Below are positions 1 to 22,788 of a stretch of 40,000 nucleotides of DNA, piece after piece (within the stretch, counting starts at the first letter, position 1; every line of letters begins with the position of its first letter). This stretch comes from Takakia lepidozioides. Lineage: Eukaryota > Plantae > Bryophyta. The stretch is from the NCBI GenBank assembly GCA_030704615.1, contig JAKLZA010000079.1, forward strand, positions 1 through 40,000. The letters are read 5' to 3'. The position numbers and the translations under genes were made by a program. The notes below the pieces were generated by a model that worked only from the letters and a program-made list of their open reading frames with translations, was not told the DNA's origin and searched no databases.

Positions 1-761
1 CACCAGGGGTGTCCGTCATGCTTTCGATCCATGTCTGTTAACATCCCGGAGGATTTCTTTGACGAAGAAACAGGTGGAAACTCGAAGATGACATTGCCAT
101 CGACTTCGGGAGGCAGAAACGTTACCTTTCTGACTGGGAATTTGGCATAGTCGAGAGCAGCCAGCTCGGAGCGAGAACCATCGAGGTGATGTTGTCGTAG
201 GAGCTGCACAATGGACCGGGTTGGAGTTATGCTCGAGGGCACATGCGTAGCACCTACAGAGACGTCCATGCCGGATTTGAACGACCGTGTGGAGGACATG
301 GGTACCTCAATGCAATCATCTTCCTCGTTGGAAATGTCGAATACGTCCACACGAGAAGCTACGGAGGGTCTTGACGGTCCAGGTCGGGAATGATTATCGT
401 TGCATACCTCTCTGTTGGCAGTGGCCGCCTCTCGGTTTCCGGACTCCTTTGTGGATGGTGTGGGCAGCGACTGATTCGGAAAGGGAATGGGCATTCCCAC
501 AGCTCGGTACAGGATGGTGTCTGACGGGGGAACGTGCCATTCGATTCCGCAACCTCCGTCGTTACCTAGCACGACAATGGTCTCGTCAACCTGTCCAGGA
601 ACATCCTTCCTTTCTTCTTCCAAATAAACTGTGCCCGGTTTGAGCTTGAATTTGGAACAAAGGTAAGTTTCAGTCACTCTGCAAAGTCCTCCCTCGTTTG
701 GGATCCAGGCTCTCCCAAGTTGCGGAGGACAGCAAACTATAGCGTAGGAATTCGGAGCCAT
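1..761 (-). CDS. 5' part of the element A transposase (continues off window)
   Basis: Reverse complement of 19182-19941; open through KKSSGMLTDMDRKHDGHPW. Confidence 0.85.
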   Translation of the reverse strand, partial: MAPNSYAIVCCPPQLGRAWIPNEGGLCRVTETYLCSKFKLKPGTVYLEEERKDVPGQVDETIVVLGNDGGCGIEWHVPPSDTILYRAVGMPIPFPNQSLPTPSTKESGNREAATANREVCNDNHSRPGPSRPSVASRVDVFDISNEEDDCIEVPMSSTRSFKSGMDVSVGATHVPSSITPTRSIVQLLRQHHLDGSRSELAALDYAKFPVRKVTFLPPEVDGNVIFEFPPVSSSKKSSGMLTDMDRKHDGHPW

Positions 762-930
762 CGAACACCGCACGGAGTTGGCAAGTGCGAGGTTCAGTAT
801 AGCGACAGACCAAGGCTCACAGGCACCATGCGGAGTCCATCGACGATTGGAAGTCGCACATTGAAGTGGAAAGTATTACGACAGCTTCATACAGCGCAAT
901 TCCGACCGCTTGAGACATTCATACTATCCA

Positions 931-2000
931 GAACGGAAATGCGGCAACGCATTTCCGTTTTGACTGAAAATCGTGAACCATCTGAACTAAAATGCGGCAC
1001 CGTATTTCCATCCGAGTCGCACCAACCAACATTCCAGAACGGAAATGCGGTACCGCATTTCCGTTCTGACTGAAAATCGTGAACCGTCGGAACTGAAATG
1101 CGGCAACGGATTTCCATCCGAGTCGCACTTCCCAACATTCCAGAACGGAATGTATTAGATTCAAAAGGGAAATGCGGCACCGCATTTCCGTTCTGATGAA
1201 ATATCCTGAAACCTCGGAACTGAAATGCGGTACCGCATTTCCGTCGGAGTCGCACCTTCCGACATTCCAAAACGGAAATGCGGCGCCGCATTTTCGTTTT
1301 GTATGTGAGGCATGGAGCTGTGGAACAAAAATGCGGCACGGCATTTCCGCCAGCGTCAGACGTTAATACTCTACAGAACGGAAATGCGGTACCGCATTTC
1401 CATTCTGACTGAAAATCGTGCGCAACGGGAACAGAAATCCGGCACCGCATTTCCGTTCCAGTCGCACCTTCCGACATTCTAGAACGGAAATGCGGCGCCG
1501 CATTTCCGTTTTGTATATTGGGCCTGGAGCTGTGCTACGAAAATGTGTAGCAGCATTTCCATCCATGTGAGACCTTCAAAGTTTCCGGACCGGAAATGCG
1601 GCACCGCATTTCTGTCCAGGTAAGACCTCTATACTTTCCCGAACGGAAATGTGGCACGACATTTCCATTCATCATCTAACGGATGTGAAGTGGGAACGGA
1701 AATGCGGTACCGCATTTCCGTTCACATTGAAAATCATGAACCACTGGGAACAGAAATGTTGTGCCTCATTCCCGTCCCAATCGCACCTTTCGACATTCCA
1801 GAACGGAAATGCGGCGCCGCATTTCCCTTTTGAATCTCATACTTGGAGCTGTGGGACGGAAATGCGGCACCGTATTTCCGTTCAACAACTAAGGTATGTG
1901 AAGGTGGAACGGAAATGCGGTGCCGCATTTCTTCCAACAAGTACGGATGTGTAGCTTCGTGATGGTACTTAACGGAAATGCGGCGCCGCATTCGCATTTT
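931..2000. repeat. Array of ~20 palindromes GGAAATGCGGYRCCGCATTTCC, 53-bp period (element A intergenic)
   Basis: Starts counted at 935, 988, 1041, 1094, 1168, 1221, 1274, 1327, 1380, 1433, 1486, 1539, 1592, 1645, 1698, 1752, 1805, 1858, 1911, 1974. Confidence 0.92.
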
Positions 2001-2343
2001 CGCTCCAACTCATCAGACGCTGGGACGGAAATACCTTGAAATGTGAACACGTGGAGCACGGAATTGCTGCACATGTCGGCACTCTATCTGACTGAAGGGG
2101 CATGAGGGCGGCGCGGCCTGACCGTTCGATAATGATGTTTGTTTTTCGGACGGCAGGCGTACCTCAACGATTCGAATTTCGTAATGACGCAAACTCCCCG
2201 AGGAGACACTTTCGTCCAACCCTTTCGAACCCAAGTGGTGCATCACCGCCGTTTCATCTACTTTTGTCGTGTCTCCTCAGTCACCCCTCTCGCGCCCTTT
2301 CCATCTGCACTCTTTGCCCCTTTTCCCTGTCTCTGTTCTTCTT

Positions 2344-5300
2344 ATGCTCGAACCTGAGAGGGGGGGAGTTCATGCACCAGACATGAGACCTTGTCGCAAG
2401 CTCCGAAAATTATACTTCGGACGTAGGCCAATGCCGAAGGGGAGGAAGCAGATGCGTCTATAGGAGGAGATTGCCATCTCCGAGCAGCAGGCCACTCAGG
2501 CAACCCAGCCACCAGTGAGAGCTCCATGCGATCGGGCTACGCGCAGCTGATCGAGCACCGAACCCCCCATTTTGCTTCTGTAATTCTTAGACTGAATGCT
2601 AGGAGACTTGAATGCAGAACATGTTTGCATGCCTAACAGGAAAGGTGGACGTGCTGGAGGGATCGCAGGAATCCGAAGAGCCGCAGGAAGAGTCCGAGGA
2701 GCTAGCTGCAGCACGTACACCCACCCGATCCCCGAGCGCGGGTATTCCTGCCGGGCCTAGCCCTCTGCGATTCAAAGACGCGTCTTCGAAGGGCAAGTTC
2801 AAAGTCCCAGAGATCGACGATCGCGTTCTTCGGTCATGTAGAATCGCCAGCAGGGGTCGGGCCCTTCTCCAGCAAAGTCGAAGAAAAGAAGCAGCCCGTC
2901 CCTCTACTGGCTTCTGAACCGGCTCAGGCCGATTCACCCCCCCCAACGCGAATGAAGCAGCAGGGTAGAAGACAGATTCAATTGCAGCAGCAGACACCTT
3001 CACTGCAAAGGATGAGGAAGCAGAAGGCAATCAGGGCGACGGGCGAACAATCTCCCGCAAACCGCTTCCACGAGCTGAAGCTCAGTTCCTGGAGGATTTC
3101 CCGCCTGTCAGATGTTGGGGCCGACTCTGCTGCAGCGAAGGCAATGGGATCGACCGTTGATCTCGATTTGGTACCGGAGGAGGGTGCTGCCGCTCAACTT
3201 TCGCAGCAAGACCTCACCACCGATGAGCAAGCAGGCCCGGAGGAGGCCTCTGCAATGGCAGAATTGCCCGCAGACAGGCCCCAGAGTGCAGCTCCAGTTG
3301 AGGATGCTCCAGCTGCTCAGCCACTACCGCACCTACAGACATGTCTCGGGAGGATTTCAAAAGTGCAGCGGATAAAATGTTGGAGGAGACACACAGTAGC
3401 ATTGGCAGAGTTCTGGGCAGCAGGGTATTCCAGCGGACTCTTCGAATCCCACTCTGTCGCATGGTCTCCCTTCCCATCGTCAGGCAGGCCCTTCCCGGAG
3501 ATGTGGATAAGCAAGTTCGCATTTCGAGAAGGGTACCGTCTGGGATCGGCAGCGTTTTACGTTCCATTGAGAATGAGGACGGCGAAACTCGTGGACCCAC
3601 TGCCGATGAATTGTCAACGTGGGATACCCACTGGCACACTCGCAACCACGAATTTGAGGCGACGCTGAAGGTGATCCCGACTTTGGCCATATGTCGGGTA
3701 AAATGTTCTTTGTGTGGGACGGGAATCACCGACTTCTCGCCTGGTGGGAGTACATCAAGCAGAACCATGCCAAGCACATTGGCTGGCATTACATGGTGGA
3801 GTGTGTCAATCCTCAGGTGAAGGCGGCAGACTCCTCCCTGCTCAAGAATGCCATGGCGGACCTCAACTCGTAAGATACTCATACCCTCCCTAGCACGTTC
3901 GAAATGCGGTGCCGCATTTCGGTTTCCATTCTGGTTTGTTTCCGTGCTTCCGTGTACTGAACTGGAGAGTGTGCCTTGCAGGGTCACTGAAATGCGTACG
4001 TGCATACCCACATGGCACATATGCTGTAGAGGGGTGAGGAAAACTGGTCTCCGCAGATGTTTGCGGAAATGCTGGAGCCCGAGCTCATTCAGAAAGCCGT
4101 TGCAAAAACAGACCGGACATGGTATCGTCTCACTATGGATGGAATGGTGGAGGTGATATACGAAGTAAGTCGTCCTCCAATTTCCTCTGCTCATCCTTCC
4201 CAATTTCAGTAATGTTTCCACATGAATCGAATGTAACGCTTCTGCATGTTTTTTGTTGGCAGTCAAACATCAAGCTGGATTTGGCCCATGCCAAACGCTT
4301 CTTCATGGAAAGTGAGGGGCAGGTCAAAACGTTGCAGTCATTGACTGAGCACTTGAAGGAAGCCGGTGTCAAGTCCAGAACCAAATACAAGTCAAAGCTT
4401 GTGAAGCTGGTGGCAATTGGCAGATCGGCACTTGGAAAGGACTTCATCCCCGAGATTGCAAAACACTATTCTCGGGCCATGCAGCCGACCATGCATTGGA
4501 GAAACTGCATCACCTCTCAACGGCATGTGTGGAGGCGAAAGAGAAGGTGAGGTTTCAATGCACTGAAGTTCCTTCCTAGCAATAGCCACTCTCTTCCAGC
4601 TCCTGACATTGGATCGGAAATGGCAGACACGGTGGCTGTCGATCTGGAATGCATCCGAGAGCATAAGGACAATGTGGTCTTTTCCACTCGAAGTTTCCGA
4701 CCCTGCAGTGGATGTGTGGCTCAACCGTATGACTTGGTGGTTCCAGGTAATTCAAGGTACTTCCCAGATTTGCTTTTCTGAACATGAATTCCCTGAACTG
4801 CTACGTGACAATGGATTTGGGAATCGCAGGTAATGTCGAATGCGAAGGAGCAAGTCGTAATGCACACAAATTCGTTCGGCTTGTACGTCAAATGGGATGG
4901 AACACAGACATTGGAAGACTACGTGACACGTTTCAGATGTGCGTACAAGGACAACCTTTTCGCCAGAGAGCTACAGACAGCAAGAAGGAGCGTGGAGTTT
5001 ACACATCAGGAGGGAGCGGGGAAAGCTGCAATGCGAATTGTTTACAGGTGAAGCACAGCTGCCCTTGTATGCGAAGCCTGGTACGAGGTTTGTCTCGGAA
5101 ATGCGGCACCGCATTCGCATTTTATGTTTTCGGTGGCACTCTGCCAGTAGGTTGGTCTCAAGTTTTGCTCACGCATACTGACTGCCTTGCAGGTATATGA
5201 AATACGTGCTCTTTCAGACAGGGGCCCTGGCTCAAGAGCCCCCTTTTTCATGGCTTGGACCATGGCGGGCCCAAGCTGTGTCTACACACCCAAGATGCAG

Positions 5301-7546
5301 AAACAATGGCATCCCGCGCATCTCGTTGGATGCCCTGGTACCTGGACATGTCTGGCGGTATTGTTGACGAGTCTGAGAAAGATCTGCACGCCTGGCAGAA
5401 GAGAAGAGAAAGGAAAGACGTGTCCCTGCTGGGCCAAAGTCGGCAAAGGAATCTGCTGCTGCTGGAAGAATCCAGAAAGGCAGCTGAGATGGCACAAAAG
5501 ACGGTGGATGCAGCTGTGCAGGCCCAACAGAAGGGGTCGAAGAAGAGGACTCGTCAGCAAGGAGCAGCTGTTGTGACACCCGCCAAAACGAAGAAGCAGA
5601 AACAGCCTGTTCAGGAAGAGGGTGAGGAAGAGGACTCCGATGGAGACTTTGCAACCAGCCCACCCCCCCAAAACGCAGGCTGCCTCCCATGTGCCCACCG
5701 TTGTCACGAGAGGCACGAGAACTGGCTCGGCAAAGAAGGCACTCTTCAACCCCCAGGGGGGCACCCTTTCGAGCCGGTGGAAATGAAGAGGCCGAAAGTG
5801 GCTCCCGAAACTGTAGTCCAGTGTTGTAAATGAGAGTTTCTTGGCGGCTTTGGATGGACGGGCAGCCAAGTTGGCATACCTGAAGACCATGGAGGGTCTG
5901 AAGGGCAGAGCACTGAAGAAAGCGACTGCCGAAGAGCCTTCCGACACCCAGGATTTCAGAATATGGTCTCGTTCTTTGAGAGGGTGTGTGCAGACAAGGA
6001 TTGTAGGAGGGGCGGAAATGCCACCGAGTGGTCTTGCGATATGATCATCTTGGATATTCCGGACGGAGAGCCTGTGGAAGGACTGCAAGCTTTGCCATCT
6101 TGGAACAGGTACTCGGAGGACTTTTGGAAGAAAGGATTCGGGCTTGCCCGCATGGTGTTGGACGACAGAGGCTGTGTGGTTGTCCTGGCGAGCAGAGGAA
6201 AAAACACTCACAGAGAACAGGAATTGCGAAGTGGACCCGCAAGAGCGCCGTCCCGATTCTGAAAAAGAAGTGGACGTGCATCAACACACTGGGCCTTCGG
6301 TCGGAAGGGAAGAAGGTGATTACGACACTGGCACTCGTCCATTCATTTGCTTGGGTGTTTTCAAATGCGGTGCCGCATTCGGTTTCTAATCGTTTTCCCC
6401 CTGTGTATGCAGACGAAGCAGTTCGATGCATACTGCTTTGTGAAGGAGAACTCCACCTTTGCTTTCCGGAAGGAGGGAGGAAAGGTTGACCCGAACTGCG
6501 ACCCACTCGATTACGACGTTCTGTTCAACAACGTTCCAAGGAACTTCTCCCTCATAGCCTCACTTCAACGGAACCCCTGCGGTACTCACGGACTCGGAGC
6601 CCTGCCTTCATTCAGACAATTATGGAGACATGCACAGACGTGGAGGGCACAGTGCTCGACCTCATCTGTGGGACAGGTATGCAGAATCTTGATCTCTGCT
6701 GTTCTGCAAATTCTCGTTAGGATGTAGTTCGCAACATCTGAAGCGCCATGTGGTAATGTGTGGATGGCATTGTAACAGGTGCCTCAATGTGGGCTGGGCG
6801 GTTTTCCGACCGGCACCTCTTTGCCTACGAGGAGGATTCATCCGTGTGGGGATCCCATCTGGAAGGGCTGCAACGGAATGTGAAGGCTCCCGACAGAGCG
6901 GAAGTCTCCTCGGATTCGTCGGAGTCCGAGGAAGACACAGTGGACATTGATGCGGAGGAGAACCCGGAATACGAGTGAGTGCAAACATTGTAAGTTTGCA
7001 AAGCCTTCTGGGTCATTTATGTCAAACGAATTTCCCGACTGTGGTTCTCATTAGTCTCGTTGATGATTGTCATGTGCAGGATTGCAGGGTCCGGGTCGAA
7101 ACATGTAGGGCCTACACTTCCTGCCAGGAAGAATGTCCCGTCTTTGCGAGGGCCGATTTCATGACGAGCCCGGTGAGGGACTACTCCCTTCCTAGTTATG
7201 CAGCTAAACTCGCAAATACAGCGATTAGAAGAAGTGAGAATCCCAGTAAAGTAGAGCAGATTTTGGAGAGGGCTAGGAGGACAGAAGGATAAGGAAAGAG
7301 TTGGCAGCAGCTCAGACAGGTAGACGGGTACGAAAGTACATATGTGATTCAGCGGATGAGAGCGACGCAGACAGGGAGGAAGACGACCCAACGGAGGTGA
7401 GATGGACAGTTCCGCAAGGGGAAGATGGGATTTTCGAAAGCCTGGCCAACGAGCAGTCCGCTGGAGATGAGAGAGGCACTGAGGGGGTGGAGGAGGAGCA
7501 GGACAGTCTAGAACAGGATGAGGATTCGGATGATTTTCAAGATTAA
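2344..7546 (+). pseudogene. ParB/Srx-like domain plus beta-class N6A/N4C DNA methyltransferase-fold protein, element A (~10 exons, stop and frameshifts)
   Basis: FFVWDGNHRLLAW (ParB-like). CDMIILDIPDG (motif IV-like), LARMVLDDRGCVVV, SPAFIQTIMETCTDVEGTVLDLICGTG/ASMWAG..LFAYEED (motifs X-I-II). Predicted exons ~2344-2514, 2640-3869, 3982-4164, 4263-4546, 4627-4746, 4830-5047, 5193-6315, 6413-6676, 6779-6974, 7080-7546; first intron uncertain. TAG at 2461 is CAG in B. Confidence 0.8.
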
Positions 7547-7679
7547 TAGAATTTTAATGAAGTCTCTGTAAATGTAAATTCTCTTCCAGAGTATATAAAG
7601 AAATTCTGCCCGACATTCGTGACCCCTCTCCAGTGTGCATTCCAGCCACACAATCGCCAAACCACGACGCTCCCAAAAT

Positions 7680-8375
7680 CAGAAATGGGGCACCGCATTT
7701 CCAAAACAGGGGAACTCTAAGAACCTCTTTTCGAAATGCGGCACCGCATTTCCAAAACAGGGGAGGGACTAAATTTTCATTTCAATGTTGGCATAGTAAA
7801 AGTAATCTGAATTGGAAATGCGGTGCTGCATTTCCAAAATTTCCTTTGTCCACACGCCAGTTTTGGCCTCTCCAACTCATTGCATGGATGCCACCACGCT
7901 TACAGAGGTCGAACAACGAGGTCGAACAAGGAGGTCGACATGGCGGGATTGAAAATGCGGTGCCGCATTCAGTATTGGGGATGGTCGTTGTTCGAAATGC
8001 AGGCCCATCAGCAAAAATTGGCACCGCATTCCATTGTAAAAAAAAGTCGATGACGGACATGGAAATGCGGCGCCGCATTTCCAGAACGGACATCGCAATT
8101 TGTCCATTTGCAGACCCTCTCACGGAAATGCGGTAACGCATTCCATCGCGCTGGTCGGAAATGTCACACTTTTCGAAGTGTTGGACGGAAATGCGGCACC
8201 GCATTCCCTTGTCCAAAAGAAGTTTCCATTGCCAAGCTGGAAATGCGTCGCCGCATTTGCAATGCCAACCTCGTTGTCTGTCAATTTATAGACCCGTGTT
8301 GGTATTTCGTGTACCTGGACGGAAATGATGCACCGCATTTCGATGCCGACATGGAAATGCGGTGCCGCATTTCAA
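7680..8375. repeat. Palindrome cluster downstream of the ParB-MTase gene (A)
   Basis: About 10 copies, e.g. 8061, 8124, 8187, 8239, 8321, 8353. Confidence 0.85.
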
Positions 8376-8854: not shown

Positions 8855-8936
8855 GGGGGCTGCTATTTCATGAGCCATGAGCCATGAGCGGCATGAGCCA
8901 TGAGCAGAGTCGTAAGTGTGGAAAAAAACATGAGCA
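8855..8936 (+). repeat. Left TIR and subterminal CATGAG repeats, element B
   Basis: GGGGGCTGCTATTTCATGAGCCATGAGCCATGAGCGGCATGAGCCATGAGC... Confidence 0.85.
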
Positions 8937-9317
8937 GCACTATTTTCCGGAAATGAGTGTCCGCGGGAATAGGGTTTAGGGTGCCACGGTCATAGGGGGA
9001 GAAGGACCTCCCGATGAAGGAGGTTCGGCAATGTTATTTAGAATTATATATTGAAAGGCAATGTTTCGCGAATGGTAGGGTGGTACTGCTCTGTACAATG
9101 GGGGCCCATTTCAGCCTACCAGCCATTTGCAAAATTCACCCACACTCCCAATCCCAAACGAAATGAGCAATGACGCATTCTCGGAACAATGGACACAGAA
9201 TAGAATAAAAAGAGGGCACAATGAGGTTTTTATTGATCCACATGAATTGCATTTGAAGCACGTCTACTGTGCTGATTGTGCCCTCAAATCTTGAGCCCTG
9301 TGCCTACTGAATACAAG

Positions 9318-9881
9318 TCACGTTGTCAATGGGACTTCGACTGCTCTCAGAACTAGCTCATGAGTCCTGGGGCTCCTCCATGTAAAGTCGATTGCAGCCG
9401 TTGTACCGCCCCTAGTGATGTTCACCACAATGTCCTGCCCTTCAATCATACCACCATCGAATATGGAAATCTTCACGTTTTCGTCGTCCACACCAATGCG
9501 AATGTCCCCATACAATGGAGAAGAGGAGCGCACTCCTCGAGGAGAATAGGTCTCTCCGATGGAGTCCACCCACGTCCAGTGGCAGCAGTTCCACCGCAAC
9601 AGCATAGCAGTGCGCCTTCTTCTGCATGGGTGACCGTCGTAGCTGGGAAAATCGGAATCGAGGATGCGCAGGAGCCACGGACTCCTCAAACCAAGATCGT
9701 CACCCCGCTCGAAGGCGTAGTGGCCTACGATATACTCAAAAGCCACCAATGTTTCCACAATCGAACCAGTATCTTCTGTGTAATCTGTGTACCAGATAAC
9801 AATGTCTCCCGATGTGGCCGAATACATTGCATAATCGATGCCTCCAAAGGGGCAGTCGTCCCGGTTCCGGAAGCACGGCAT
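9318..9881 (-). CDS. Orphan cargo protein X1 (187 aa, unknown function), element B, intact
   Basis: Open frame MPCFRNRDDCPF...ELVLRAVEVPLTT. Full-length similarity to paralog X2, including a shared start context AAGGATGCCGTGC. Confidence 0.72.
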   Translation of the reverse strand: MPCFRNRDDCPFGGIDYAMYSATSGDIVIWYTDYTEDTGSIVETLVAFEYIVGHYAFERGDDLGLRSPWLLRILDSDFPSYDGHPCRRRRTAMLLRWNCCHWTWVDSIGETYSPRGVRSSSPLYGDIRIGVDDENVKISIFDGGMIEGQDIVVNITRGGTTAAIDFTWRSPRTHELVLRAVEVPLTT

Positions 9882-10519
9882 CCTTGCAATGGAGGACCTG
9901 AGGACGACTTGGATGCCGATGACCTTGCGGACAGCTACGAAGCCCTTAGATTTTGGAAAAGATACGAAGCGGAAGAGCAGTCCGGCCTCCAAAATGGAGC
10001 ATCTGGGTCACACGTACCCACCGACGGAGGTGGAACGTGTTCATCACGCCAGCGGTGGATGAAGCCATACATCTTTCTCATCAACAAGTTATAGTTTGAG
10101 ATCTGCCACCGAAGTCCATCCCCCCGGATGGAAATTCGGCGCCGCATTTACATCGAAGGGGGATGGACTTCGTCGTGTCCAGTGGCTATCGGCCCACCTG
10201 GCAGTGACTGCCCATAGTTTGCATGGCAGGGTAGGAAACTGAAACGGCTACATTCATGCAGCAGCCAATCTTCATCGGTCCAGGATCCTGTACGGGGGAA
10301 ATTTAAATGTGCCCTGGAGTGTGCCCTGGAATGTACCTCACTCTGTATGACTGTGTTTCATTGTGTTGAATAACTCTCGGATTTGGCCCACTGTTTACAA
10401 TTTGATGTCTCATTTCTACAATTTTCTGTCTGGTTGAATAAAGCAGAGTAACCGGTATGTGAGTCATGTGTCAAGAATATACCAGAGTAACGCCATGTCG
10501 GACATTGAAATAATGTCGG

Positions 10520-11295
10520 CATAACCGCATTTCCATGTCGGCAAATGCGGCGATGTCGGATCGAAATGCATTTCCATGTCGGACATCGAAATCGGGACAT
10601 CCGGCACCGCATTTCCATGTGGGACAAGAAAATGCGGTGCATCATTTCCGTCCAGGTACACGAAATACCAACACGGGTCTATAAATTGATCAGAAAACGA
10701 GGTTGGCATTGCAAATGCGGCGACGCATTTCCAGCTTGGCAATGGAAACTTCTTTTTGGACAAGGGAATGCGGTGCCGCATTTCCGTCCAACACTTCGAA
10801 AAGTGCACCTATTTCCGACCAGCGCGATGGAATGCGTTACCGCATTTCCGAGAGAGGGTCTGCAAATTGACAAATTGCGATGTCCGTTCTGGAAATGCGG
10901 CGCCGCATTTCCATGTCCGTCATCGACTTTTTTTTTACAATGGAATGCGGTGCCAGTTTTTGCTGATGGGTCTGCAGTTCGAACAACCACCATCCCCAAT
11001 ATGGAAATGCGGCACCGCATTTCCAATCCCGCCATGTCGGCCTCCTTGTTCGACCTCTTGTTCGACCTCTGTAAGCGTGGTGGCATCCATGCAATGAGCG
11101 GGAGAGGCCAAAACTGGCGTGTGGACAAAGGAAATTTTGGAAATGCGGCACCGCATTCCCAATTCAGATTACTTTTTACTATGCCAACATTGAAATGGAA
11201 AAATTAGTCCCTCCCCTGTTTTGGAAATGCGGTGCCGCATTTCCAAAAGAGGTTCTTAGAGTTGCCAAAATTTTGGAAATGCCCTGACCCATTTC
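10520..11295. repeat. Palindrome cluster downstream of the ParB-MTase gene (B)
   Basis: Mirror of 7680-8375 with extra scrambled part-copies near 10510-10620. Confidence 0.82.
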
Positions 11296-11432
11296 TGATT
11301 TTGGGAGCGTCCTGGTTTGGGCGATTGTGTGGCTGGAATGCACACTGGAGAGGGGTCACGAATGTCGGGCAGAATTTTCTTTATATACTCTGGAAGAGAA
11401 TTTACATTTACAGAGACTTCATTAAAATTCTA

Positions 11433-14400
11433 TTAATCTTGAAAATCATCGGAATCCTCATCCTGTTCTAGACTGTCCTGCTCCTCCTCCACCCCTCAGT
11501 GCCTCTCTCATCCAGCGGACTGCTCGTTGGCCAGGCTTTCAAAAATCCCATCTTCCCCTTGCGGAACTGTCCATCTCACCTCCGTTGGGTCGTCTCCTCC
11601 CTGTCTGCGTCGCTCTCATCCGCTGAATCACATATGTACTTTCGTACCCGTCTACCTGTCTGAGCTGCTGCCAACTCTTTCCTTATCCTTCTGTCCTCCC
11701 TAGCCCTCTCCAAAATCTGCTCTACTTTACTGGGATTCTCACTTCTTCTAATCGCTGTATTTGCGAGTTTAGCTGCATAACTAGGAAGGGAGTAGTCCCT
11801 CACCGGGCTCGTCATGAAGTCGGCCCTCGCAAAGAACGGGACATTCTTCCTGGCAGGAAGTGTAGGCCCTACATGTTTCGACCCGGACCCTGCAATCCTG
11901 CACATGACAATCATCAACGAGACTAATGAGAACCACAGTCGGGAAATTCCTTTGACATAAATGACCCAGAAGGCTTTGCAAACTTACAATGTTTGCACTC
12001 ACTCGTATTCCGGGTTCTCCTCTGCATCAATGTCCACTGTGTCTTCCTCGGACTCCGACGAATCCGAGGAGACTTCCGCTCTGTCGGGAGCCTTCACATT
12101 CCGTTGCAGCCCCTCCAGATGGGATCCCCACACGGATGAATCCTCCTCGTAGGCAAAGAGGTGCCGGTCGGAAAACCGCCCAGCCCACATTGAGGCACCT
12201 GTTACAATGCCATCCACACATTACCACATGGCGCTTCAGATGTTGCGAACTACATCCTAACGAGAATTTGCAGAACAGCAGAGATCAAGATTCTGCATAC
12301 CTGTCCCACAGATGAGGTCCAGCACTGTGCCCTCCACGTCTGTGCATGTCTCCATAATTGTCTGAATGAAGGCAGGGCTCCGAGTCCGTGAGTACCGCAG
12401 GGGTTCCGTTGAAGTGAGGCTATGAGGGAGAAGTTCCTTGGGAACGTTGTTGAACAGAACGTCGTAATCGAGTGGGTCGCAGTTCGGGTCAACCTTTCCT
12501 CCCTCCTTCCGGAAAGCAAAGGTGGAGTTTTCCTTCACAAAGCAGTATGCATCGAACTGCTTCGTCTGCATACACAGGGGGAAAACGATTAGAAACCGAA
12601 TGCGGCACCGCATTTGAAAGCACCCAAGCAAATGAATGGACGAGTGCCAGTGTCGTAATCACCTTCTTCCCTTCCGACCGAAGGCCCAGTGTGTTGATGC
12701 ACGTCCACTTCTTTTTCAGAATCGGGACGGCGCTCTTGCGGGTCCACTTCGCAATTCCTGTCTGAGTGTTTTTTCCTCTGCTCGCCAGGACAACCACACA
12801 GCCTCTGTCGTCCAACACCATGCGGGCAAGCCCGAATCCTTTCTTCCAAAAGTCCTCCGAGTACCTGTTCCAAGATGGCAAAGCTTGCAGTCCTTCCACA
12901 GGCTCTCCGTCCGGAATATCCAAGATGATCATATCGCAAGACCACTCGGTGGCATTTCCGCCCCTCCTACAATCCTTGTCTGCACACACACCCTCTCAAA
13001 GAACGAGACCATATTCTGAAATCCTGGGGTGTCGGAAGGCTCTTCGGCAGTCGCCTTCTTCAGTGCTCTGCCCTTCAGACCCTCCATGGTCTTCATGTAT
13101 GCCAACTTGGCTGCCCGTCCATCCAAAGCCGCCAAGAAACTCTCATTTACACACTGGACTACAGTTTCGGGAGCCACTTTCGGCCTCTTCATTTCCACCG
13201 GCTCGAAAGGGTGCCCCCTGGGGGGTTGAAGAGTGCCTTCTTTGCCGAGCCAGTTCTCGTGCCTCTCGTGACAACGGTGGGCACAGGGGAGGCAGCCTGC
13301 GTTTGGGGGGGTGGGCTGGTTGCAAAGTCTCCATCGGAGTCCTCTTCCTCACCCTCTTCCTGAACAGGCTGTTTCTGCTTCTTCGTTTTGGCGGTGTCAC
13401 AACAGCTGCTCCTTGCTGGCGAGTCCTCTTCTTCGACCCCTTCTGTTGGGCCTGCACAGCTGCATCCACCGTCTTTTGTGCCATCTCAGCTGCCTTTCTG
13501 GATTCTTCCAGAGCAGCAGATTCCTTTGCCGACTTTGGCCCAGCAGGGACACGTCTTTCCTTTCTCTTCTCTTCTGCCAAGGCGTGCAGATCTTTCTCAG
13601 ACTCGTCAACAATACCGCCAGACATGTCCAGGTACCACGGGCATCCAACGAGATGCGCGGGATGCCATTGTTTCTGCATCTCGGGTGTGTAGACACAGCT
13701 TGGGCCCGCCACGGTCCAAGCCATGAAGAACGGGGGCTCTTGAGCCAGGGCCCCTGTCTGAAGGAGCACGTATTTCATATACCTGCAAGGCAGTCAGCAT
13801 GCGTGAGCAAAACTTGAGACCAACCTACTGGCAGAGTGCCACCGAAAACATAAAATGCGAATGCGGTGCCGCATTTCCGAGACAAACCTCGTAACCAGGC
13901 TTCGCATACAAGGGCAGCTGTGCTTCACCTGTAAACAATTCGCATTGCAGCTTTCCCCGCTCCCTCCTGATGTGTAAACTCCACGCTCCTTCTTGCTGTC
14001 TGTAGCTCTCTGGCGAAAAGGTTGTCCTTGTACGCACATCTGAAACGTGTCACGTAGTCTTCCAATGTCTGTGTTCCATCCCATTTGACGTACAAGCCGA
14101 ACGAATTTGTGTGCATTACGACTTGCTCCTTTGCATTCGACATTACCTGCCATTCCCAAATGCATTGTCACGTAGCAGTTCAGGGAATTCATGTCAGAAA
14201 AGCAAATCTGGGGAAGTACCTTGAATTACCTGGAACCACCAAGTCATACGGTTGAGCCACACATCCACTGCAGGGTCGGAAACTTCCAGTGGAAAAGACC
14301 ACATTGTCCTTATGCTCTCGGATGCATTCCAGATCGACAGCCACCGTGTCTGCCATTTCCGATCCAATGTCAGTGGCTGGAAGAGAGTGGCTATTGCTAG

Positions 14401-16635
14401 GAAGGAAATTCAGTGCATTGAAACCTCACCTTCTCTTTCGCCTCCACACATGCCGTTGAGAGGTGATGCAGTTTCTCCAATTGCATGGTCGGCTGCATGG
14501 CCCGAGAATAGTGTTTTGCAATCTCGGGGATGAAGTCCTTTCCAAGTGCCGGATCTGCAATTGCCACCAGCTTCACAAGCTTTGACTTGTATTTGGTTCT
14601 GGACTTGACCGGCTTCCTTCAAGTGCTCAGTCAATGACTGCAACGTTTTGACCTGCCCCTCACTTTCCATGAAGAAGCGTTTGGCATGGGCCAAATCCAG
14701 CTTGATGTTTGACTGCCAACAAAAACATGCAGAAGCGTTACATTCGATTCATGTGGAAACATTACTGGAAATTGGGGAAGGATGAGCAGAGGGAAATTGG
14801 AGCACGACTTACTTCGTATATCACCTCCACCATTCCATCCATAGTGAGACGATACCATGTCCGGTCTGTTTTTGCAACGGCTTTCTGAATGAGCTCCGGC
14901 TCCAGCATTTCCGCAAACATCTGCGGATCAGTAAGACCAGTTTTCCTCACCCTGTACAGCATATGTGCCATGTGGGTATGCACGTACGCATTCTCAGTGA
15001 CCCTGCAAGGCACACTCTCCAGTTCAGTACACGGAAGCACGGAATCAAACCAGAATGGAAACCGAAATGCGGCACCGCATTTCGAATGTGCTAGGGAGGG
15101 TATGAGTATCTTACGAGTTGAGGTCCGCCATGGCATTCTTGAGGAGGGAGGAGTCTGCCGCCTTCACCTTGAGGATGACACACTCCACCATGTAATGCCA
15201 GCCAATGTGCTTGGCATGGTTCTGCTTGATGTACTCCCACCAGGCGAGAAGTCGGTGATTCCCGTCCCACACAAAGAACATTTTTCCCGACATATGGCCG
15301 AAGTCGGGATCACCCTTCAGCGTCGCCTCGAATTCGTGGTTGCGAGTGTGCCAGTGGGTATCCCACGTTGACAATTCATCGGCAGTGGGTCCACGGGTTT
15401 CGCCGTCCTCATTCTCTATGGAAACGTAAAACGCTGCCGATCCCAGACGGTACCCTTCTCGAAATGCGAACTTGAGCTTATCCACATCTCCGGGAAGGGC
15501 CTGCCTGACGATGGGAAGGGAGACCATGCGACAGAGTGGGATTCGAAGAGTCCGCTGGAATACCCTGCTGCCCAGAACTCTGCCAATGCTACTGTGTGTC
15601 TCCTCCAACATTTTATCCGCTGCACTTTTGAAATCCTCCGGAGACATGTCTGTAGGTGCGGTAGTGGCTGAGCAGGTGGAGCATCCTCAACTGGAGCTGC
15701 ACTCTGGGGCCTGTGTGCGGGCAATTCTGCCATTGCAGAGGCCTCCTCCGGGCCTGCTAGCTCATCGGTGGTGAGGTCTGCCTGCGAACGTTCAGCGGCA
15801 GCACCCTCCTCCGGTACCAAATCGAGATCAACGGTCGATCCCATTGCCTTCGCTGCAGCAGAGTCGGCCCCAACATCTGCAGGCGGGAAATCCTCCAGGA
15901 ACTGAGCTTCAGCTCGTGGAAGCGGTTTTGCGGGAGATTGTTCGCCCGTCGCCCTGATTGCCTTCTGCTTCCTCATCCTTGCAGGTGAAGGTGTCTGCTG
16001 CAATAGAATCTGTCTTCTACCCTGCTGCTTCATTCGCGTTGGGGGGGTGAATCGGCCTGAGCCGGTTCAGAAGCCAGTAGAGGGACGGGCTGCTTCTTCT
16101 TCGACTTTGCTGGAGAAGGGCCCGACCCCTGCTGGCGATTCTCCATGATCGAAGAACGCGAGTCGATCTCTGAGACTTGAACTTGCCCTTCGAAGACGCG
16201 TCTTTGAATCGCAGAGGGCTAGGCCCGGCAGGAGTACCCGCGCTCGGGGATCGGGTGGGTGTACGTGCTGCAGCTAGCTCCTCGGACTCTTCCTGCGGCT
16301 CTTCGGATTCCTGCGATCCCTCCAGCACGTCCACCTTTCCTGTTAGGCATGCAAACATGTTCTGCATTCAAGTCTCCTAGCATTCAGTCTAAGAATTACA
16401 GAAGCAAAATGGGGGGTTCGGTGCTCGATCAGCTGCGCGCAGCCCGATCGCATGGAGCTCTCACTGGTGGCTGGGTTGCCTGAGTGGCCTGCTGCTCGGA
16501 GATGGCAATCTCCTCCTGTAGACGCATCTGCTTCCTCCCCTTCGGCATTGGCCTACGTCCGAAGTATAATTTCCGGAGCTTGCGACGAGGTCTCCTGTCT
16601 GGTGCACGAACTCCCCCCCTCTCAGGTTCGAGCAT
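11433..16635 (-). pseudogene. ParB-like plus amino-MTase-fold protein, element B copy (frameshifted)
   Basis: Reverse complement of 2344-7546. ORF 15111-15647 holds the intact ParB-like domain and ORF 12257-12631 holds MTase motifs X-I. Confidence 0.8.
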
Positions 16636-16979: not shown

Positions 16980-18756
16980 AATGCGAATGCGGCGCCGCAT
17001 TTCGTTAAGTACATCAGCTACACATCCGTACTTGTTGGAAGAAAATGCGGCACCGCATTTCCGTTCCACCTTCACATACCTTAGTTGTTGAACGGAAATA
17101 CGGTGCCGCATTTCCGTCCCACAGCTCCATGTATGAGATTCAGAAGGGAAATGCGGCGCCGCATTTCCGTTCCCACTTCACATACGTTAGTTGATGAATG
17201 GAAATGCCGTGCCACATTTCCGTTCGGGAAAGTATAGAGGTCTCACCTGGACAGAAATGCGTGTCGCATTTCCGGTCTGGAAAGGTTGAAGGTCTCACAT
17301 GGATGAAATGCGGCAACACATTTCCGTAGCACAGCTCCAGGCCGAATATACAAAACGGAAATGCGGCGCCGCATTTCCGTTCGAGAATGTCGGAAGGTGC
17401 GACGGAAATGCGGTGCCGCATTTCTGTACCCGTTGCGCACGATTTTCAGTCAGAATGGAAATGCGGTACCGCATTTCCGTTCTGTAGAGTATTAACGTCT
17501 GACGCTGGCGGAAATGCCTTCCCGCATTTTCGTTCCACAGCTCCATGCCTCACATACAAAACGGAAATGCGGTGCCGCATTTCCGTTTTGGAATGTCGGA
17601 TGGTGGGACTCCGACGGAAATGCGGTACCGCATTTCAATTCCGATGTTTCAGGATATTTCATCAGAACGGAAATGCGGTGCCGCATTTCCTTTTTAAATC
17701 TAATACATTCCGTTCTGGAATGTTGGGAGGTGCGACTCGGATGGAAATGCGCTGCCGCATTTCAGTTCCGATGGTTCACGATTTTCAGTCAGAACGGAAA
17801 TGCGGTGCCGCATTTCCGTTCTGGCTGATGGTAGGTGCGACTCGGATGGAAATACGGTGCCGCATTCAGTTCCGATGGTTCACGATTTTCAGTCAGAACG
17901 GAAATGCGGTGCCGCATTTCCGTTCTGGCGACTCAATTTGCGCATTTCAGTTCGATGGTTCACGATCAGTCAGAACGGAACGCATTTCCGTTCTGGATGA
18001 TGGTAGGTGCGACTCGGATGGAAATACGGTGCCGCATTTCAGTTCAGATAGTTCACGATTTTCAGTCAGAACGGAAATGCGGTGCCGCATTTCCGTTCTG
18101 GATAGTGTGAATGTCTCAACCGGTCGGAATTGCGCTGTATGAAGCTGTCGGAATCTTACTCGGCTCCAGGCATCAGATACAAAAATGGAAATGCGGCGCC
18201 GCATTTCCGAATTGCGACTTAATGTGAATGTCGAAAAGTGCGACTTTGACGGAAATGCGGTGCCGCATTTCTTCTGTTCCCGTTGTTCATAATTCTCAAT
18301 CAGAACGGAAATGCGGTACCGCATTTCCGTTCCACCTTCACATACCGTGCTTGTTGAATGAAAATGCGGTACCGCATTTCCGTTCTCGAGAGTATGAATG
18401 TCTTTTAAGGACGGAAATGTGCTGCAGCATTTCTATCCCTCAGCTCCATGCATCAGATACAAAATGGAAATGCGGCGCCGCATTCCCGTTCTGGAATGTC
18501 GAAAAGTGCGACTCGGACGGAAATGCGGTGCCGCATTTCTGTTCCCGTTGTTCATAAATCTCAATCAGAACGGAAATGCGGTACCGCATTTCCGTTCCAC
18601 CTTCACATACCGTGCTTGCTGGATGGAAATGCGTTACCGCATTTCCGTTCTGGAGAGTATAAAGGTTTCCCCCGGACGGAAACTCGGTGCCGCATTTCCG
18701 TCGCTCTGTTGCATGACCAAGATGCAATACGGAAATGCGGCGCCGTATTTCCGTCC
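16980..18756. repeat. Array of ~30 of the same palindrome (element B intergenic)
   Basis: For example starts at 18307, 18360, 18413, 18466, 18519, 18572, 18625, 18678, 18731 (53-bp steps). Confidence 0.92.
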
Positions 18757-19181
18757 ACCAGCAATCGACAGAATCACTCGTGACGGGAAATCTGGAACCT
18801 CAATGGGTTGCATTGTTCCGAAACAACACAATTGCGGCCAGTCTTGATGAGCACAACTTGGTTGTCTGACCGTTTTAACCAGCAGTCCTGGCACTTGTCA
18901 GTGCGAACGTTCCTGTCTGCACCGAGAATACTGCTGGATCCACCCTCAGGAGAAACTGTCAGGAGATGTTATTTCGTCGCCGAATCGGCCATCATTGTCC
19001 TACTCACTGGCTATGGAATCAAACCTCCCACCTTCATGCATGTAGCTTGAAACAATACTTTCCACTTCAATGTGCGACTTCCAATTGTCGATGGACTCCG
19101 CAGATCCACTTAGATGGTGCCTGTGAGCCTTGGTCTGTCGCTATACTGAACCTCGCACTTGCCAACTCCGTGCGGTGTTCG

Positions 19182-22100
19182 ATGGCTCCGAATTCCTACG
19201 CTATAGTTTGCTGTCCTCCGCAACTTGGGAGAGCCTGGATCCCAAACGAGGGAGGACTTTGCAGAGTGACTGAAACTTACCTTTGTTCCAAATTCAAGCT
19301 CAAACCGGGCACAGTTTATTTGGAAGAAGAAAGGAAGGATGTTCCTGGACAGGTTGACGAGACCATTGTCGTGCTAGGTAACGACGGAGGTTGCGGAATC
19401 GAATGGCACGTTCCCCCGTCAGACACCATCCTGTACCGAGCTGTGGGAATGCCCATTCCCTTTCCGAATCAGTCGCTGCCCACACCATCCACAAAGGAGT
19501 CCGGAAACCGAGAGGCGGCCACTGCCAACAGAGAGGTATGCAACGATAATCATTCCCGACCTGGACCGTCAAGACCCTCCATAGCTTCTCGTGTGGACGT
19601 ATTCGACATTTCCGACGAGGAAGATGATTGCATTGAGGTACCCATGTCCTCCACACGGTCGTTCAAATCCGGCATGGACGTCTCTGTAGGTGCTACGCAT
19701 GTGCCCTCGAGCATAACTCCAACCCGGTCCATTGTGCAGCTCCTACGACAACATCACCTCGATGGTTCTCGCTCCGAGCTGGCTGCTCTCGACTATGCCA
19801 AATTCCCAGTCAGAAAGGTAACTTTTCTGCCTCCCGAAGTCGATGGCAATGTCATCTTCGAGTTTCCACCTGTTTCTTCGTCAAAGAAAGCCTCGGGATG
19901 TTAACAGACATGGATCGAAAGCATGACGGACACCCCTGGTGTGTGACGAAGACCAGTAGCACGAAAATTGCTGATGGTGTTCGTGTACGATATGTCCTCT
20001 GTGCGGGGAAGCTGAGGTGCCTCAATCCCACCTGCTTCCACTTTCTCTCCAAAGGAGGGCGGAGAAACGAGACGGATTGGACTGGCACAACGCATCATCC
20101 ATTCATTGTCTCCAGCCAAGCTCCTGCGGGTTCTTTCAAGTGTGCACATTGCAAAGAACCACCGACGTGCATGTCCATGTGCAGAGCCAAGCAATATTAC
20201 GTAATCCATTTGCTCCCGGACTTGACTAGAGCTTGCATACACGTTGGGGTCCACTGCCACCCCTTGGCGAGAGGCAACATGCGTGAGGCTGTGCAGGAAG
20301 CACACGACATCATAAAAGAGGAGGTGAAATTGAGCCCCGGAGCCAGACCAAAGCAGATTCAGCTGAAGGCAGCCCACAAGATTGCTCTTGGCAAAATCAT
20401 GTCTGAAGATGGTTCCGACCGAGAGCCCTTGACCGAAGACGAGATGCGTGACCTCTTGGAGTCCGTCTCGCACGTTTGTAGTCCGAATGTGCGGAATCAC
20501 ATCGTATCTTGCAAGCAGGAGTTCGGCAGGGGGTCGGACATGTACTCAATCCTGGAGGTGAAACGAATGACTGGATATGACTACATCCAAGGTAGCAGGT
20601 TTCCAGGGCAAGGCAGCGAATCCGATCGTTGTTACATTTTCAAAATGTCGACGTGTGGGCCTGGGAGTGGAGTCGACTTGGTCACTCGCATGACAACTGG
20701 AAACTTGTCGAATGCTTGGGTGATGTTTGATCACATCAAGCGAATTACAAACCATCAGTGGGTGACTATGGGTGCGCATGTTTATGACTATCACTCCAAG
20801 AGGCTCATGACGATTGCAATCTGCGAGATGAAAGGGGAGGACACACAGTCCGAGATGCATCTGTGGGAGGGCATAAACCAGCAGATGGCAAGGGCGGGAT
20901 TGCCAGAGCCCAATTTCAGGGGATTCATGGCAGACAACGCTCAGGCCAACTGGGCAGCGGTGCGGCGTGTGTACGGTGAGGACCCCAATGTTCCAATGGA
21001 GGGGAAAGAGAGATCCTGTGGATTCCATTGGATGCAGAGTCTATCCCACTACACTACCAAATTTGTTGCTAGCTCATTCCAGGCTGAACACCGTGTCCTT
21101 TGTACGGCGTGGAAGGATGCACCCACATTTGATGACGCGGAGGTTAAGTTTGCTATCATCGAGGCTTGGTGGAACACGTCAGGTGCAGTGGAGACAACCA
21201 ATCTGGGAGCATTGCACAGCTGGTTGGGGTGGTGGCATTTTCGGTATCGACAGTTCGGACAGTACATGCGGGAGGTAGGCTGCTGTCATTTTCGTTCATT
21301 TGTCTTTCTGTTACGGACATTTCGATTGGTCCCTCACCGTTGTTTGTGTCCTTCTAGGAGCGGTGCTTGGATTCCGACACGGACATGCCGAACACGAATA
21401 TGGCAGAATCGGTCCACTCCTCCTGGCGAGCGTCTTCTGCCGCACATCTGGTGGACGTAGTGACGGCCACAACGGAGGACATCGACAGAGCAATCATGCA
21501 GCAAGCCACGTACTACAAGTTCCTGAGCGGCAAACAATGGGGCTTTGGGCCGGACAGGGAGGAATTGTTGGTACGAACAGCTTCGAGGTCCAAGAATCCA
21601 GTGAAATGGGCGACAGCATTGCGAGAGAAGATCAAAGGGACGCCTCTGCACCGCAGAGGTGAACACCTAGAGGGGGACGTCCGGACTCGCCCTGTCAGGC
21701 GGAGGATTGAAGAGGAACCCGGGTGCGAAGAGGATTCCTGGAGATCCGACAGGAACATTCGGACAGCACCTCGAGGTCCCGTCATGTTGCCGCACAATGT
21801 GTCTTCCAGCAGTGGAAGCCCAAGAAATTCCAGATCGCCGTCGCCTTCAACCGGGGATTTCGTGCAACAAATTCCCACCGCTCCCTTGCCCCACATTCCG
21901 CCCGCTGTTATGCAGTATGGCCAAGCCATTGTGGAGACGACTGTGTCTGCCTCACAGTGGAGAATTGCTCGCACAAAGCCGTCGTTTCGAGGAAGGTGTT
22001 CCGCAATTCGTGTGGATACACGGCAACGTTGTTTAGAGATGATAAGGAGGAATCCAGATGGGGCTGTCCCTGCTCCTACTTTTACAGGAAGATTTGTCCA

Positions 22101-22788
22101 TGCAAAGTTTGCGGAGGCGACAACCACCCAGTTCTGGTTCTGCAGGCACGACATTATGACTTGCGTGTATGGAAAGCCCAAGTACGGCATACAGACAATG
22201 CCAGAGGCTCCCCCGGTGTGGCCGGTGGAACCAGGCTGCGATCTGAGTCAGGTTGAGGCCGACGCCCTTACCGCCGCAGGATTTCGGATGGTGCAGCGCA
22301 CTGACGTGCCCAGACAACCATTTCCGCTTCCACAGCCTCCACCACCGACCCCTGTGAGAGCAAGAACAATGGGACACGACAGCTCTAAGCATCCTACACA
22401 CCGTTGGGGGAAACCGAAGAGGCGGCGACCTCCCTCAAAAGTGAACGAGACAAGGATGGGGAATGCACTTCGGATGAACTGTACAATCCAGAGCTCGACA
22501 GAAGTGCCCCCACCAGGATTCGGGCGTGTGTATCAGATGGCCACGGCGGGCTCAGCTGTTCGCAATGAGGTGTACACCATCACCATTTCAGAATTACCCA
22601 CCTGCAATTGCACCGACTTCCAGATCATGGCGAACAAGGGGGCATCATACTGCCCTTGCAAGCATTTGTACTACGTGTACCTAAAGAGACTCCGTTGTAA
22701 TTCCACAACTCATCACTTCATACATGCACCAGGGTTGAGCCCCCAGGAGGTTCACACTCTTCTGAATATGGATCCAGGGGACCAGTGA
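19182..22788 (+). CDS. MULE transposase of element B (GCM-like Zn domain, DDE core, C-terminal SWIM); 2 exons, one apparent 1-bp frameshift near 19895
   Basis: Start MAPNSYA aligns with MAENPSA of C. GCM-like DGHPW..CAGKLRCLNPTC..CAHC..C..C..HVGVHCHP. MULE core WVMFD, FMADNAQA, CGFHW, TNMAES. SWIM CNCTDF..CPCKHLYYV. Intron 21275-21357 (GT..AG) at the same position as in C. Copy A reads through the frameshift site in frame. About 1,170 aa. Confidence 0.88.

Follow-up and report, generated by a model that had tools for sequence, protein, structure and literature searches.

Arrays of palindromic sites at whole-helical-turn spacing in putative Mutator-like transposons of the moss Takakia lepidozioides

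The genomic stretch analyzed here comprises 40,000 nucleotides of the moss Takakia lepidozioides (NCBI GenBank assembly GCA_030704615.1, contig JAKLZA010000079.1, positions 1 to 40,000 of the forward strand; hereafter, the window) and holds two copies and one diverged relative of a putative Mutator-like DNA transposon, each with a transposase gene, an accessory gene and arrays of a 22-bp palindrome. The centers of adjacent palindromes lie preferentially at whole turns of the DNA helix from each other, an arrangement that might have been shaped by cooperative binding of a protein encoded by the element itself.

Transposon copies and gene layout

Self-comparison of the window delineates two nearly identical copies, denoted A and B, and a third, diverged relative, denoted family C. 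The gene layout was derived by fetching six distant relatives via the transposase open reading frame (ORF) and mapping their ORFs onto the window. This layout, a transposase and a divergently oriented multi-exon accessory gene, is conserved. The elements and their genes are as follows.

1-8373, copy A, inverted relative to copy B (19941-10596) and 97% identical to it
~27000-39500, family C
8855-10322, left long terminal inverted repeat, 1.47 kb, 96% identical to 25557-24110, with a hybrid palindrome at 10130
24110-25557, right long terminal inverted repeat, 1.47 kb, with a hybrid palindrome at 24280
19152-22770, plus strand, transposase of copy B
35816-38939, plus strand, transposase of family C
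791-3, minus strand, transposase of copy A, truncated at the start of the window
12089-15656, minus strand, accessory gene of copy B, blocks 15656-15117, 15040-14747, 14600-14227, 13814-13362 and 12962-12089
27261-31753, minus strand, accessory gene of family C, with the block order of copy B and a first exon of 64% protein identity

In the same self-comparison, the transposase regions of family C and copy B are ~73% identical in DNA. The two 1.47-kb inverted repeats (8855-10322 and 25557-24110) enclose copy B. At the tips of these repeats, no target-site duplication of 8-11 bp, the length typical of Mutator-like elements (MULEs), was found, and the two flanks are unlike each other; accordingly, the locus has been rearranged, and copy B does not represent a clean insertion. 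At each repeat tip, starting 14 bp inward, the 7-bp unit CATGAGC is present five times (8869-8905 and 25507-25543). Copies A and B are arranged tail to tail as an inverted duplication, with the terminal repeat adjoining copy B only, and the homology between them stops exactly at the palindrome on both sides (8353-8374 and 10595-10616). The sequences suggest that this duplication may have arisen by a fold-back or a template switch at the palindrome rather than by two separate insertions.

The palindromic site and its arrays

The palindrome of families A/B, GGAAATGCGGYRCCGCATTTCC, has 86 matches at three or fewer mismatches, compared to none in 100 shuffles. In the family C palindrome, GGAAATTCGGCGCCGAATTTCC, a G is replaced by T symmetrically in the two arms, and a pattern that admits this variant (ATTCGG..CCGAAT) identifies 116 sites in the window at five or fewer mismatches. 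With these 116 sites, the recurrence of the 22-bp palindrome every ~53 bp that was reported in a preliminary description of the window, as well as every spacing listed there, could be reproduced.

The site has a core of 22 bp and a full extent of 28-30 bp, over which it remains palindromic. In a logo of 77 sites, the arms GGAAATGCGG and CCGCATTTCC are strongly conserved and the flanks gaAC...GTtc weakly so; the central dinucleotide varies (TG in 27 sites, CA in 21, CG in 15 and TA in 12), and the CpGs of the arms are retained in 57-60 of the 77. The central letters track particular spacer types, which indicates that they are inherited features of the repeats and not the outcome of recent decay. 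Two conserved 10-bp arms located approximately one turn apart, with a free central pyrimidine-purine (YR) step between them, would fit a dimeric binder that reads the half-sites and leaves the center uncontacted. The site is a perfect or near-perfect palindrome and hence has no orientation; it is not a direct repeat of the kind found in plasmid iterons. To our knowledge, the 22-bp site GGAAATGCGGYRCCGCATTTCC (28-30 bp when extended) is also unlike the 16-bp parS consensus of bacteria. A metagenome scan with a degenerate version of the palindrome yielded 16 loci, with a single match in each and no arrays. Three hybrid palindromes, in which an A/B-type arm (ATGCGG) is combined with a C-type arm (CCGAAT), are present at 10130-10151, 23040-23061 and 24280-24301, two of the three within the terminal inverted repeats of copy B.

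The sites are organized into the following arrays.

935-1995, array A, 20 palindromes with 16 intervals of 53 bp, single intervals of 54 and 74 bp, and a final one of 63 bp
16983-18752, array B, 31 palindromes, matching array A in inverted orientation but extended by an extra stretch (17981-18752)
7681-8374, end array of copy A, spacings of 51, 82, 137, 110, 63, 63, 52, 82 and 32 bp
10595-11296, end array of copy B, mirroring 7681-8374, spacings of 33, 83, 53, 64, 63, 112, 136, 84 and 52 bp
33423-35066, intergenic arrays of family C with palindrome GGAAATTCGGCGCCGAATTTCC, units of 53/54, 85 and 95/96 bp
28927-29910, intron-like array of family C, ten 95-bp units (spacings of 91-95 bp) in a gap of the accessory gene
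39114-39474, subterminal array of family C, downstream of the transposase, spacings of 75, 73 and 62 bp

The space between the two divergent genes is taken up by the largest arrays, and smaller ones are found near the element ends. Array A lies between the truncated transposase (791-3, minus strand) and the accessory gene of copy A; array B is located between the accessory gene and the transposase of copy B, includes eight 53-bp intervals at 18307-18731, and carries a 265-bp higher-order repeat in its extra stretch (17981-18752). The end array of copy B sits 273 bp inside the left terminal inverted repeat, and each of the 1.47-kb repeats contains a single site. Single palindromes also occur in three gaps between the coding blocks of the copy B accessory gene, one per gap (15063, 13857 and 12596). 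This distribution speaks against simple terminal transposase sites and would suit a protein by which the element as a whole is marked or regulated.

The intergenic spacings of family C are 53, 85, 85, 84, 63, 50 and 53 bp, then 52-54 bp, and finally 71, 96, 95, 95, 96, 93 and 102 bp. These arrays flank an inverted repeat of ~460 bp (33796-34258, 84% identity), the center of which (33941-34039) contains a different palindrome, GGAATTACC...GGTAATTCC, at ~30-bp spacing. In the same intergenic region, half-site-like motifs GGTAATTCGG are found 22-23 bp upstream of many main palindromes. Each unit of the intron-like array (28927-29870) includes a second, interrupted palindrome with 12-bp arms (AGGGACTTAGCC/GGCTAAGTCCCT) and an 8-nt loop, centered 47-48 bp from the main palindromes, that is, exactly midway between them, or ~4.5 turns away. 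The spacer of the subterminal array is related to the unit of the intron array.

Helical phasing of the sites

In the A/B arrays, a length of exactly 31 bp is common to all spacers despite a divergence of 35-57%, and they align in register only. Between the young copies A and B, by contrast, 87 substitutions and 42 indels are seen outside the arrays, and a further 80 substitutions and 18 indels, including changes of -6 and -5 bp, inside them, which amounts to 60 indels per 167 substitutions overall, or 12 once 1-bp indels are ignored; the substitution divergence is ~5% in the arrays (928-1995 and 7681-8374) compared to 1.5% elsewhere. Indels of 1 bp are unusually frequent throughout the alignment (32 of the 42 outside the arrays) and may represent either assembly error or real decay. 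Contigs from independent sequencing runs of the same organism show that the element family is present in very high copy number and that some of the 1-bp deletions in copy B are private. According to a rough estimate from the rate of A/B indels of at least 2 bp (12 per 167 substitutions), several length changes would be expected over the old divergence of the spacers. No old indel is detectable among the consensuses of the spacer types, and the sole old length change, common to A and B, is a gain of 21 bp, that is, two turns.

The spacings were evaluated with a V-test for an expected phase of zero, in which each spacer class was represented by one modal spacing and relatedness was judged by shuffling, resulting in 18 classes. 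Among all periods between 6 and 20 bp, the best was 10.5 bp (V = 0.78), with p = 5e-5 in the prior band of 10.3-10.7 bp and p = 3e-4 for any period; at periods of 10.0 and 11.0 bp, V was negative. The value at 11.0 bp rules out the 11-bp half-site as the quantum of length change. With the ~53-bp classes removed (n = 12), p for any period was 0.008, and with possible ancient duplicates merged (n = 12), p was 0.006. Automated collapsing placed the peak at 10.25-10.65 bp at all site thresholds and, when copy A was dropped, at 10.55 bp (p = 2-4e-4). Two clustering schemes that chained every spacer into one class were set aside. The strength of the phasing result depends on what counts as independent. 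By the V-test on the 18 classes, the phases within the window depart from uniformity after removal of tandem redundancy, and the best period agrees with the multiples of 10.5 bp noted in the preliminary description.

The raw intervals show the same tendency: with a tolerance of 1.5 bp, 83 of the 103 correspond to whole turns and only 3 to half turns. The three half-turn intervals (47, 58 and 120 bp) all belong to copy B. At the places of the 47-bp and 58-bp intervals, copy A has 53 and 63 bp, respectively; the stretch that holds the 120-bp interval, in which palindromes have visibly been deleted, is absent from copy A. Furthermore, most family contigs from the independent runs have an extra base at 17260 and at 17304, which converts the respective 52-bp intervals of copy B into 53 bp. 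Phased established spacings combined with private lesions of random phase would be expected from selection acting on transposing copies, followed by neutral decay, although the small number of events makes this no more than suggestive.

The spacing preferences are common to the two families: 53 bp is the main spacing in both although their spacers cannot be aligned, and spacings of 63, 82-85 and 95-96 bp recur with unrelated spacers. The phasing is real and statistically supported within the window, where it applies to these two families.

Tandem duplication history of the arrays

The A/B array consists of five or six spacer types, each of 31 bp, arranged as a 265-bp higher-order repeat, and Tandem Repeats Finder (TRF) detects periods of 106, 212 and 265 bp. 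Among spacer types T1, T3, T5 and T6, pairwise identity is 43-65%, at offset 0 alone, for every pair but T1/T5 (22%), and T2 and T4 are 65% identical to each other; between these two groups, no similarity was found at any offset. The existence of two spacer groups implies descent from an ancestral pair of units with a joint length of 106 bp. The possibility that the odd and even groups are reverse complements of each other was considered and was not borne out by comparison. In family C, the units of 50-54, 63 and 85 bp are mostly related to one another. Copy A, as a 97% identical duplicate of copy B, does not provide independent evidence. The earlier statement that the spacers differ greatly in sequence accordingly has to be qualified in that there are only five or six types, which fall into two ancestral groups.

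The accessory protein

In the accessory gene, the block 15656-15117 (exon 1) has a ParB/Srx N-domain fold according to structural modeling, and the block 12962-12089 is DNA-methylase-like. A profile search with exon 1 retrieved 994 homologues. The AlphaFold (AF2) model of exon 1 built from a 60-sequence alignment reached a predicted local distance difference test (pLDDT) score of 92, whereas an earlier one from a 5-sequence alignment was unusable (pLDDT 47). The top 40 Foldseek rows for exon 1 all belong to the ParB/Srx superfamily (ParB, Noc, KorB, PadC and sulfiredoxin). The match to residues 42-139 of Caulobacter ParB has a Z score of 8.6 and a root mean square deviation (rmsd) of 2.4 A over 96 residues, and ParB and Noc N-domains give Z scores of 8.2-8.6 and rmsd values of 2.4-2.9 A over 92-96 residues; the values for Noc, Myxococcus and Bacillus ParB, KorB, PadC and sulfiredoxin are close to those for Caulobacter ParB. 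On the strength of this model, the accessory protein is predicted to have the ParB/Srx N-domain fold, that is, the nucleotide-binding N-domain part only. A weak structural lead in the Atlas associates one distant homologue with the ParB_N and HTH_ParB families. The nearly invariant stretch DGNHR..AW could correspond to the CTP (cytidine triphosphate)-binding GxxRxxA (GERR) box. One of the exon 1 homologues, the 901-aa P0185, is placed near fungal DUF3723 clusters by a protein-language-model search (score 0.96). DUF3723 is an accessory gene family of the fungal Starship transposons, so that the two kinds of cargo gene might be connected, which is a lead only.

Pfam scans of 38 window ORFs and 10 long homologues produced a single hit, to a methylase family, in an ORF of the distant relative L018 (18074-19183; PF01555, N6_N4_Mtase, E 5.5e-7, 30.2 bits, above the cut-off), and the downstream blocks of the accessory gene are homologous to this ORF. 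The catalytic motif (D/N/S)PP(Y/F/W/H) was found neither in the window (12089-12962 and 27261-28074) nor in the L018 ORF; the methylase-like domain may be catalytically inactive. The L018 ORF has DIPDG at the presumed place of the motif and retains VGTGAS, which resembles an S-adenosylmethionine (SAM)-binding motif.

The transposase

The transposase of copy B has 65 unnamed homologues at 34-45% identity and shows no match to any Pfam family. Inspection by eye reveals a SWIM-like CxC...CxH motif at the C-terminus and a D...D...CxxH-like core. Long terminal inverted repeats, a trait of Mutator-like elements, are present and 96% identical. Judging by these sequence features, the transposase is probably Mutator-like.

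Distant relatives

Ten relatives (L017-L026) were obtained via transposase homologues with ~40% transposase identity. Seven of the ten carry palindromes of their own, five in the form of tandem arrays with periods of 116, 122, 139, 182 and 255 bp; L018 has a few palindrome sites only, 102-232 bp apart. In L025, 47 copies of GGGGTGCCGTTAACGGCACCCC with a 116-bp period (1417-7127) extend over 5.7 kb upstream of the transposase; an accessory gene would be predicted in the part of the element that this array covers.

Interpretation of the arrays and alternative explanations

From the observed sites, their symmetry and spacing and the layout of the genes, together with the modeled fold, we infer the following role of the arrays. 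The element would encode a protein that occupies the phased sites as a dimer, in a cooperative manner and along one face of the DNA, a proposition for and against which we find the balance to be even. Under this proposition, the palindromes would be family-specific sites of a dimeric transposon-encoded protein, the likeliest binder being the accessory protein with its ParB/Srx-type N-domain and methylase-like domain. The site centers in the arrays are 3, 5, 6, 7, 8, 9 or 13 turns of ~10.5 bp apart, with five turns (53 bp) as the default. Whole-turn distances between the centers imply that all dimers would be positioned on the same side of the DNA, where mutual contacts, or wrapping of the DNA, could give rise to a single cooperative nucleoprotein complex. 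Such a complex would cover the bidirectional promoter region that separates the accessory gene from the transposase gene, the zone inside the terminal repeats, and introns, and would probably serve in self-recognition or self-regulation of the element. The arrays would enlarge through tandem duplication of multi-unit blocks, with selection among transposing copies holding the unit lengths at whole turns and dead copies drifting out of phase. The dimeric element-encoded protein envisaged in the preliminary description is in keeping with the two-armed palindrome with its free center and with the presence of a gene with the ParB/Srx fold; its binding to the sites, and the cooperativity of that binding, would be predictions.

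Several results weigh against this interpretation. Most of the 53-bp regularity is due, proximately, to tandem duplication, and some increments originated mechanically: the 85-bp unit consists of 63 bp plus an abutting decayed palindrome of 22 bp. Length variants within classes are in phase in 7 of 14 cases, which is not significant (p = 0.26). Looser single-linkage clustering merges nearly all classes (n = 4-8), whereby the significance is gone and no power is left. The truly independent spacings number only ~12-18, and the pattern was singled out post hoc by a reader of the same window. The five arrays of the distant relatives have no common phase, their distances being too long for helical phase to be judged. 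With regard to the binder, exon 1 has no Pfam match, and sequence-profile searches of the PDB gave chance rows only; furthermore, the structure model covered exon 1 alone and corresponds to the ParB N-domain, with no helix-turn-helix identified.

The first three of these points, along with the lack of phasing in the relatives, would also be accounted for by history alone. Under this explanation, which in our judgment is rather unlikely, the arrays descend by duplication and divergence from an ancestral tandem repeat of 53/106 bp, the fit to 10.5 bp is coincidental and involves no selection for a helical face, and the other lengths arose by chance or through gain and loss of 22-bp or half-site pieces; the arrays are indeed higher-order tandem repeats with spacer types traceable to two ancestral spacers, and the phasing is not significant among variants or after heavy merging. 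However, history alone does not predict that the best period is 10.5 bp while V at 11.0 bp is negative, nor that a length of exactly 31 bp is held through 35-57% divergence when young copies accumulate many indels. It is likewise at odds with the recurrence of 63, 82-85 and 95-96 bp with unrelated spacers in two families and with the near absence of half-turn spacings, the three that exist being located in visibly decayed places of copy B. The earlier claim that spacing rather than spacer sequence is under selection is thus upheld in part: the spacing is quantized at ~10.5 bp and the 31-bp length is kept despite divergence, but duplication is responsible for most of the 53-bp regularity.

Phased binding sites might, alternatively, be occupied by the transposase, its N-terminal zinc-finger region contributing to the assembly of a transposition complex, in the manner of the subterminal repeats of En/Spm (with TnpA), Ac or Galileo. 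In favor of this, one array adjoins the inner side of the terminal repeat (10595-11296) and another follows the family C transposase (39114-39474), the families differ in palindrome as well as in transposase, and transposons with many internal transposase sites are known (Galileo, PMC3688188). However, there is just one palindrome in each 1.47-kb terminal repeat, the largest arrays occupy the center of the element between its two genes, and the published algal elements combine similar arrays and a ParB-like gene with transposases of other superfamilies, all of which makes the transposase an unlikely binder.

Rotational positioning on nucleosomes also has a period of ~10.5 bp, so that the sites could be set outward on nucleosomes for access of a host or element factor, with no contacts between proteins involved. 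The 10.5-bp quantization itself is the only feature in favor of such a chromatin-based arrangement; GC-rich perfect palindromes every 53 bp are atypical of a positioning sequence and the family-specific site sequence points to a specific binder, and we consider this possibility quite improbable. Finally, a function at the RNA level, with transcribed palindromes acting as hairpins (for example, in small-RNA precursors), seems very improbable: positions 18607-18682 are touched by one contig from a sequencing run that is RNA only by guess, and the intron units of family C contain the second hairpin-like interrupted palindrome, but this contig runs on into unlike sequence, 11-bp loopless stems make poor hairpins, and the 10.5-bp quantum would be left without a reason.

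Comparison with known systems

Among bacterial systems, the closest parallels are plasmid centromeres, such as sopC of the F plasmid, which consists of twelve 43-bp repeats that each contain an inverted repeat recognized by the ParB protein SopB, and parC of R1, with 11-bp repeats bound by ParR. The Takakia arrays resemble these centromeres in that tandem symmetric sites are found at approximately whole-turn spacing and a ParB-fold protein is encoded nearby. The centromere repeats are bound cooperatively by a protein of the element, as is proposed for the Takakia arrays. The present sites differ from parS and are separated by diverse spacers; moreover, there is no free replicon to segregate, the sites being located in the promoter region and introns of an integrated transposon. 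General Pfam scans of the 38 window ORFs showed no family of ParA-type ATPases, a result of limited sensitivity given that the same scans also missed the transposase. On a bolder interpretation, which we regard as doubtful, a plasmid-centromere-like device was rebuilt by a eukaryotic transposon, with a ParB-fold protein loading on the phased palindromes and forming a one-faced, cooperative filament over the promoter, the introns and the inner ends. Such a filament might serve in self-recognition and as a silencing shield, in the control of both genes, or in pairing or tethering during transposition. Under this interpretation, selection for the assembly would be strong enough to fix the spacer length to the base pair while the sequence drifts.

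In plasmid iterons, Rep monomers bind to direct repeats at an origin of replication. Helical phasing of sites for an element-encoded protein is a feature in common, the best period here being 10.5 bp. In contrast to iterons, the moss sites are palindromes flanked by a transposase and a ParB/methylase-like gene, the Pfam scans detected no Rep-like family, and no origin was noticed. By their defining features, the arrays belong neither to plasmid centromeres nor to iterons, and the label parS/iteron-like, used in the preliminary description, is valid as an analogy (phased sites, ParB fold nearby) but not literally, the sites being neither direct repeats nor parS-like and residing in an integrated transposon.

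The family of repeats of the Epstein-Barr virus oriP, which comprises approximately twenty 30-bp repeats, each with a palindrome for an EBNA1 dimer, is likewise a nuclear tandem array of palindromic dimer sites, ~three turns apart, that holds the element's own protein. However, oriP functions in episome tethering and replication, its protein has an unrelated fold and its repeats are near-identical. Many short element-specific motifs inside a eukaryotic DNA transposon are also known from En/Spm, Ac and Galileo (in the latter, THAP sites in long terminal repeats; PMC3688188), and in En/Spm these are located partly in the promoter region and bound by an element-encoded regulatory protein (TnpA). 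Unlike the moss sites, the motifs of these transposons are 6-12 bp long and irregular, with neither 22-30-bp palindromes at whole turns nor a ParB-fold protein.

The closest counterparts are giant transposons of red and brown algae, in which a ParB-like accessory gene adjoins tandem inverted-repeat arrays and self-binding has been proposed (Bostrychia Plavaka PAG3; bioRxiv 10.1101/2025.02.11.637652) and which include Ectocarpus Sola1-1 with a ParB-methyltransferase gene (PMC12477816). As in the algal elements, a ParB-like domain is followed by a methylase-like domain in one accessory gene opposite the transposase (here, the ParB/Srx fold and the PF01555-homologous blocks), and the element's own inverted-repeat arrays lie beside this gene (16983-18752, 10595-11296 and 33423-35066) or inside it (28927-29910). 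The differences are the land-plant host and the probably Mutator-like transposase. The algal papers report neither whole-turn spacing nor single sites in introns nor family-specific half-site switches, and a literature search found no paper that reports whole-turn spacing of such arrays. The element type is thus already known, and the whole-turn spacing of its arrays is a new architectural feature.

The ParB-like accessory genes and their arrays have only recently been noticed in giant algal transposons. Whole-turn spacing provides a structural clue that predicts cooperative, face-specific binding, and the proposed interpretation further predicts a contrast between intact and decayed copies. 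If correct, it would represent a rare transposon case in which selection is visible on the length of a spacer and not on its sequence and, by analogy, would point to phased self-binding as a candidate function of the ParB-like accessory genes.

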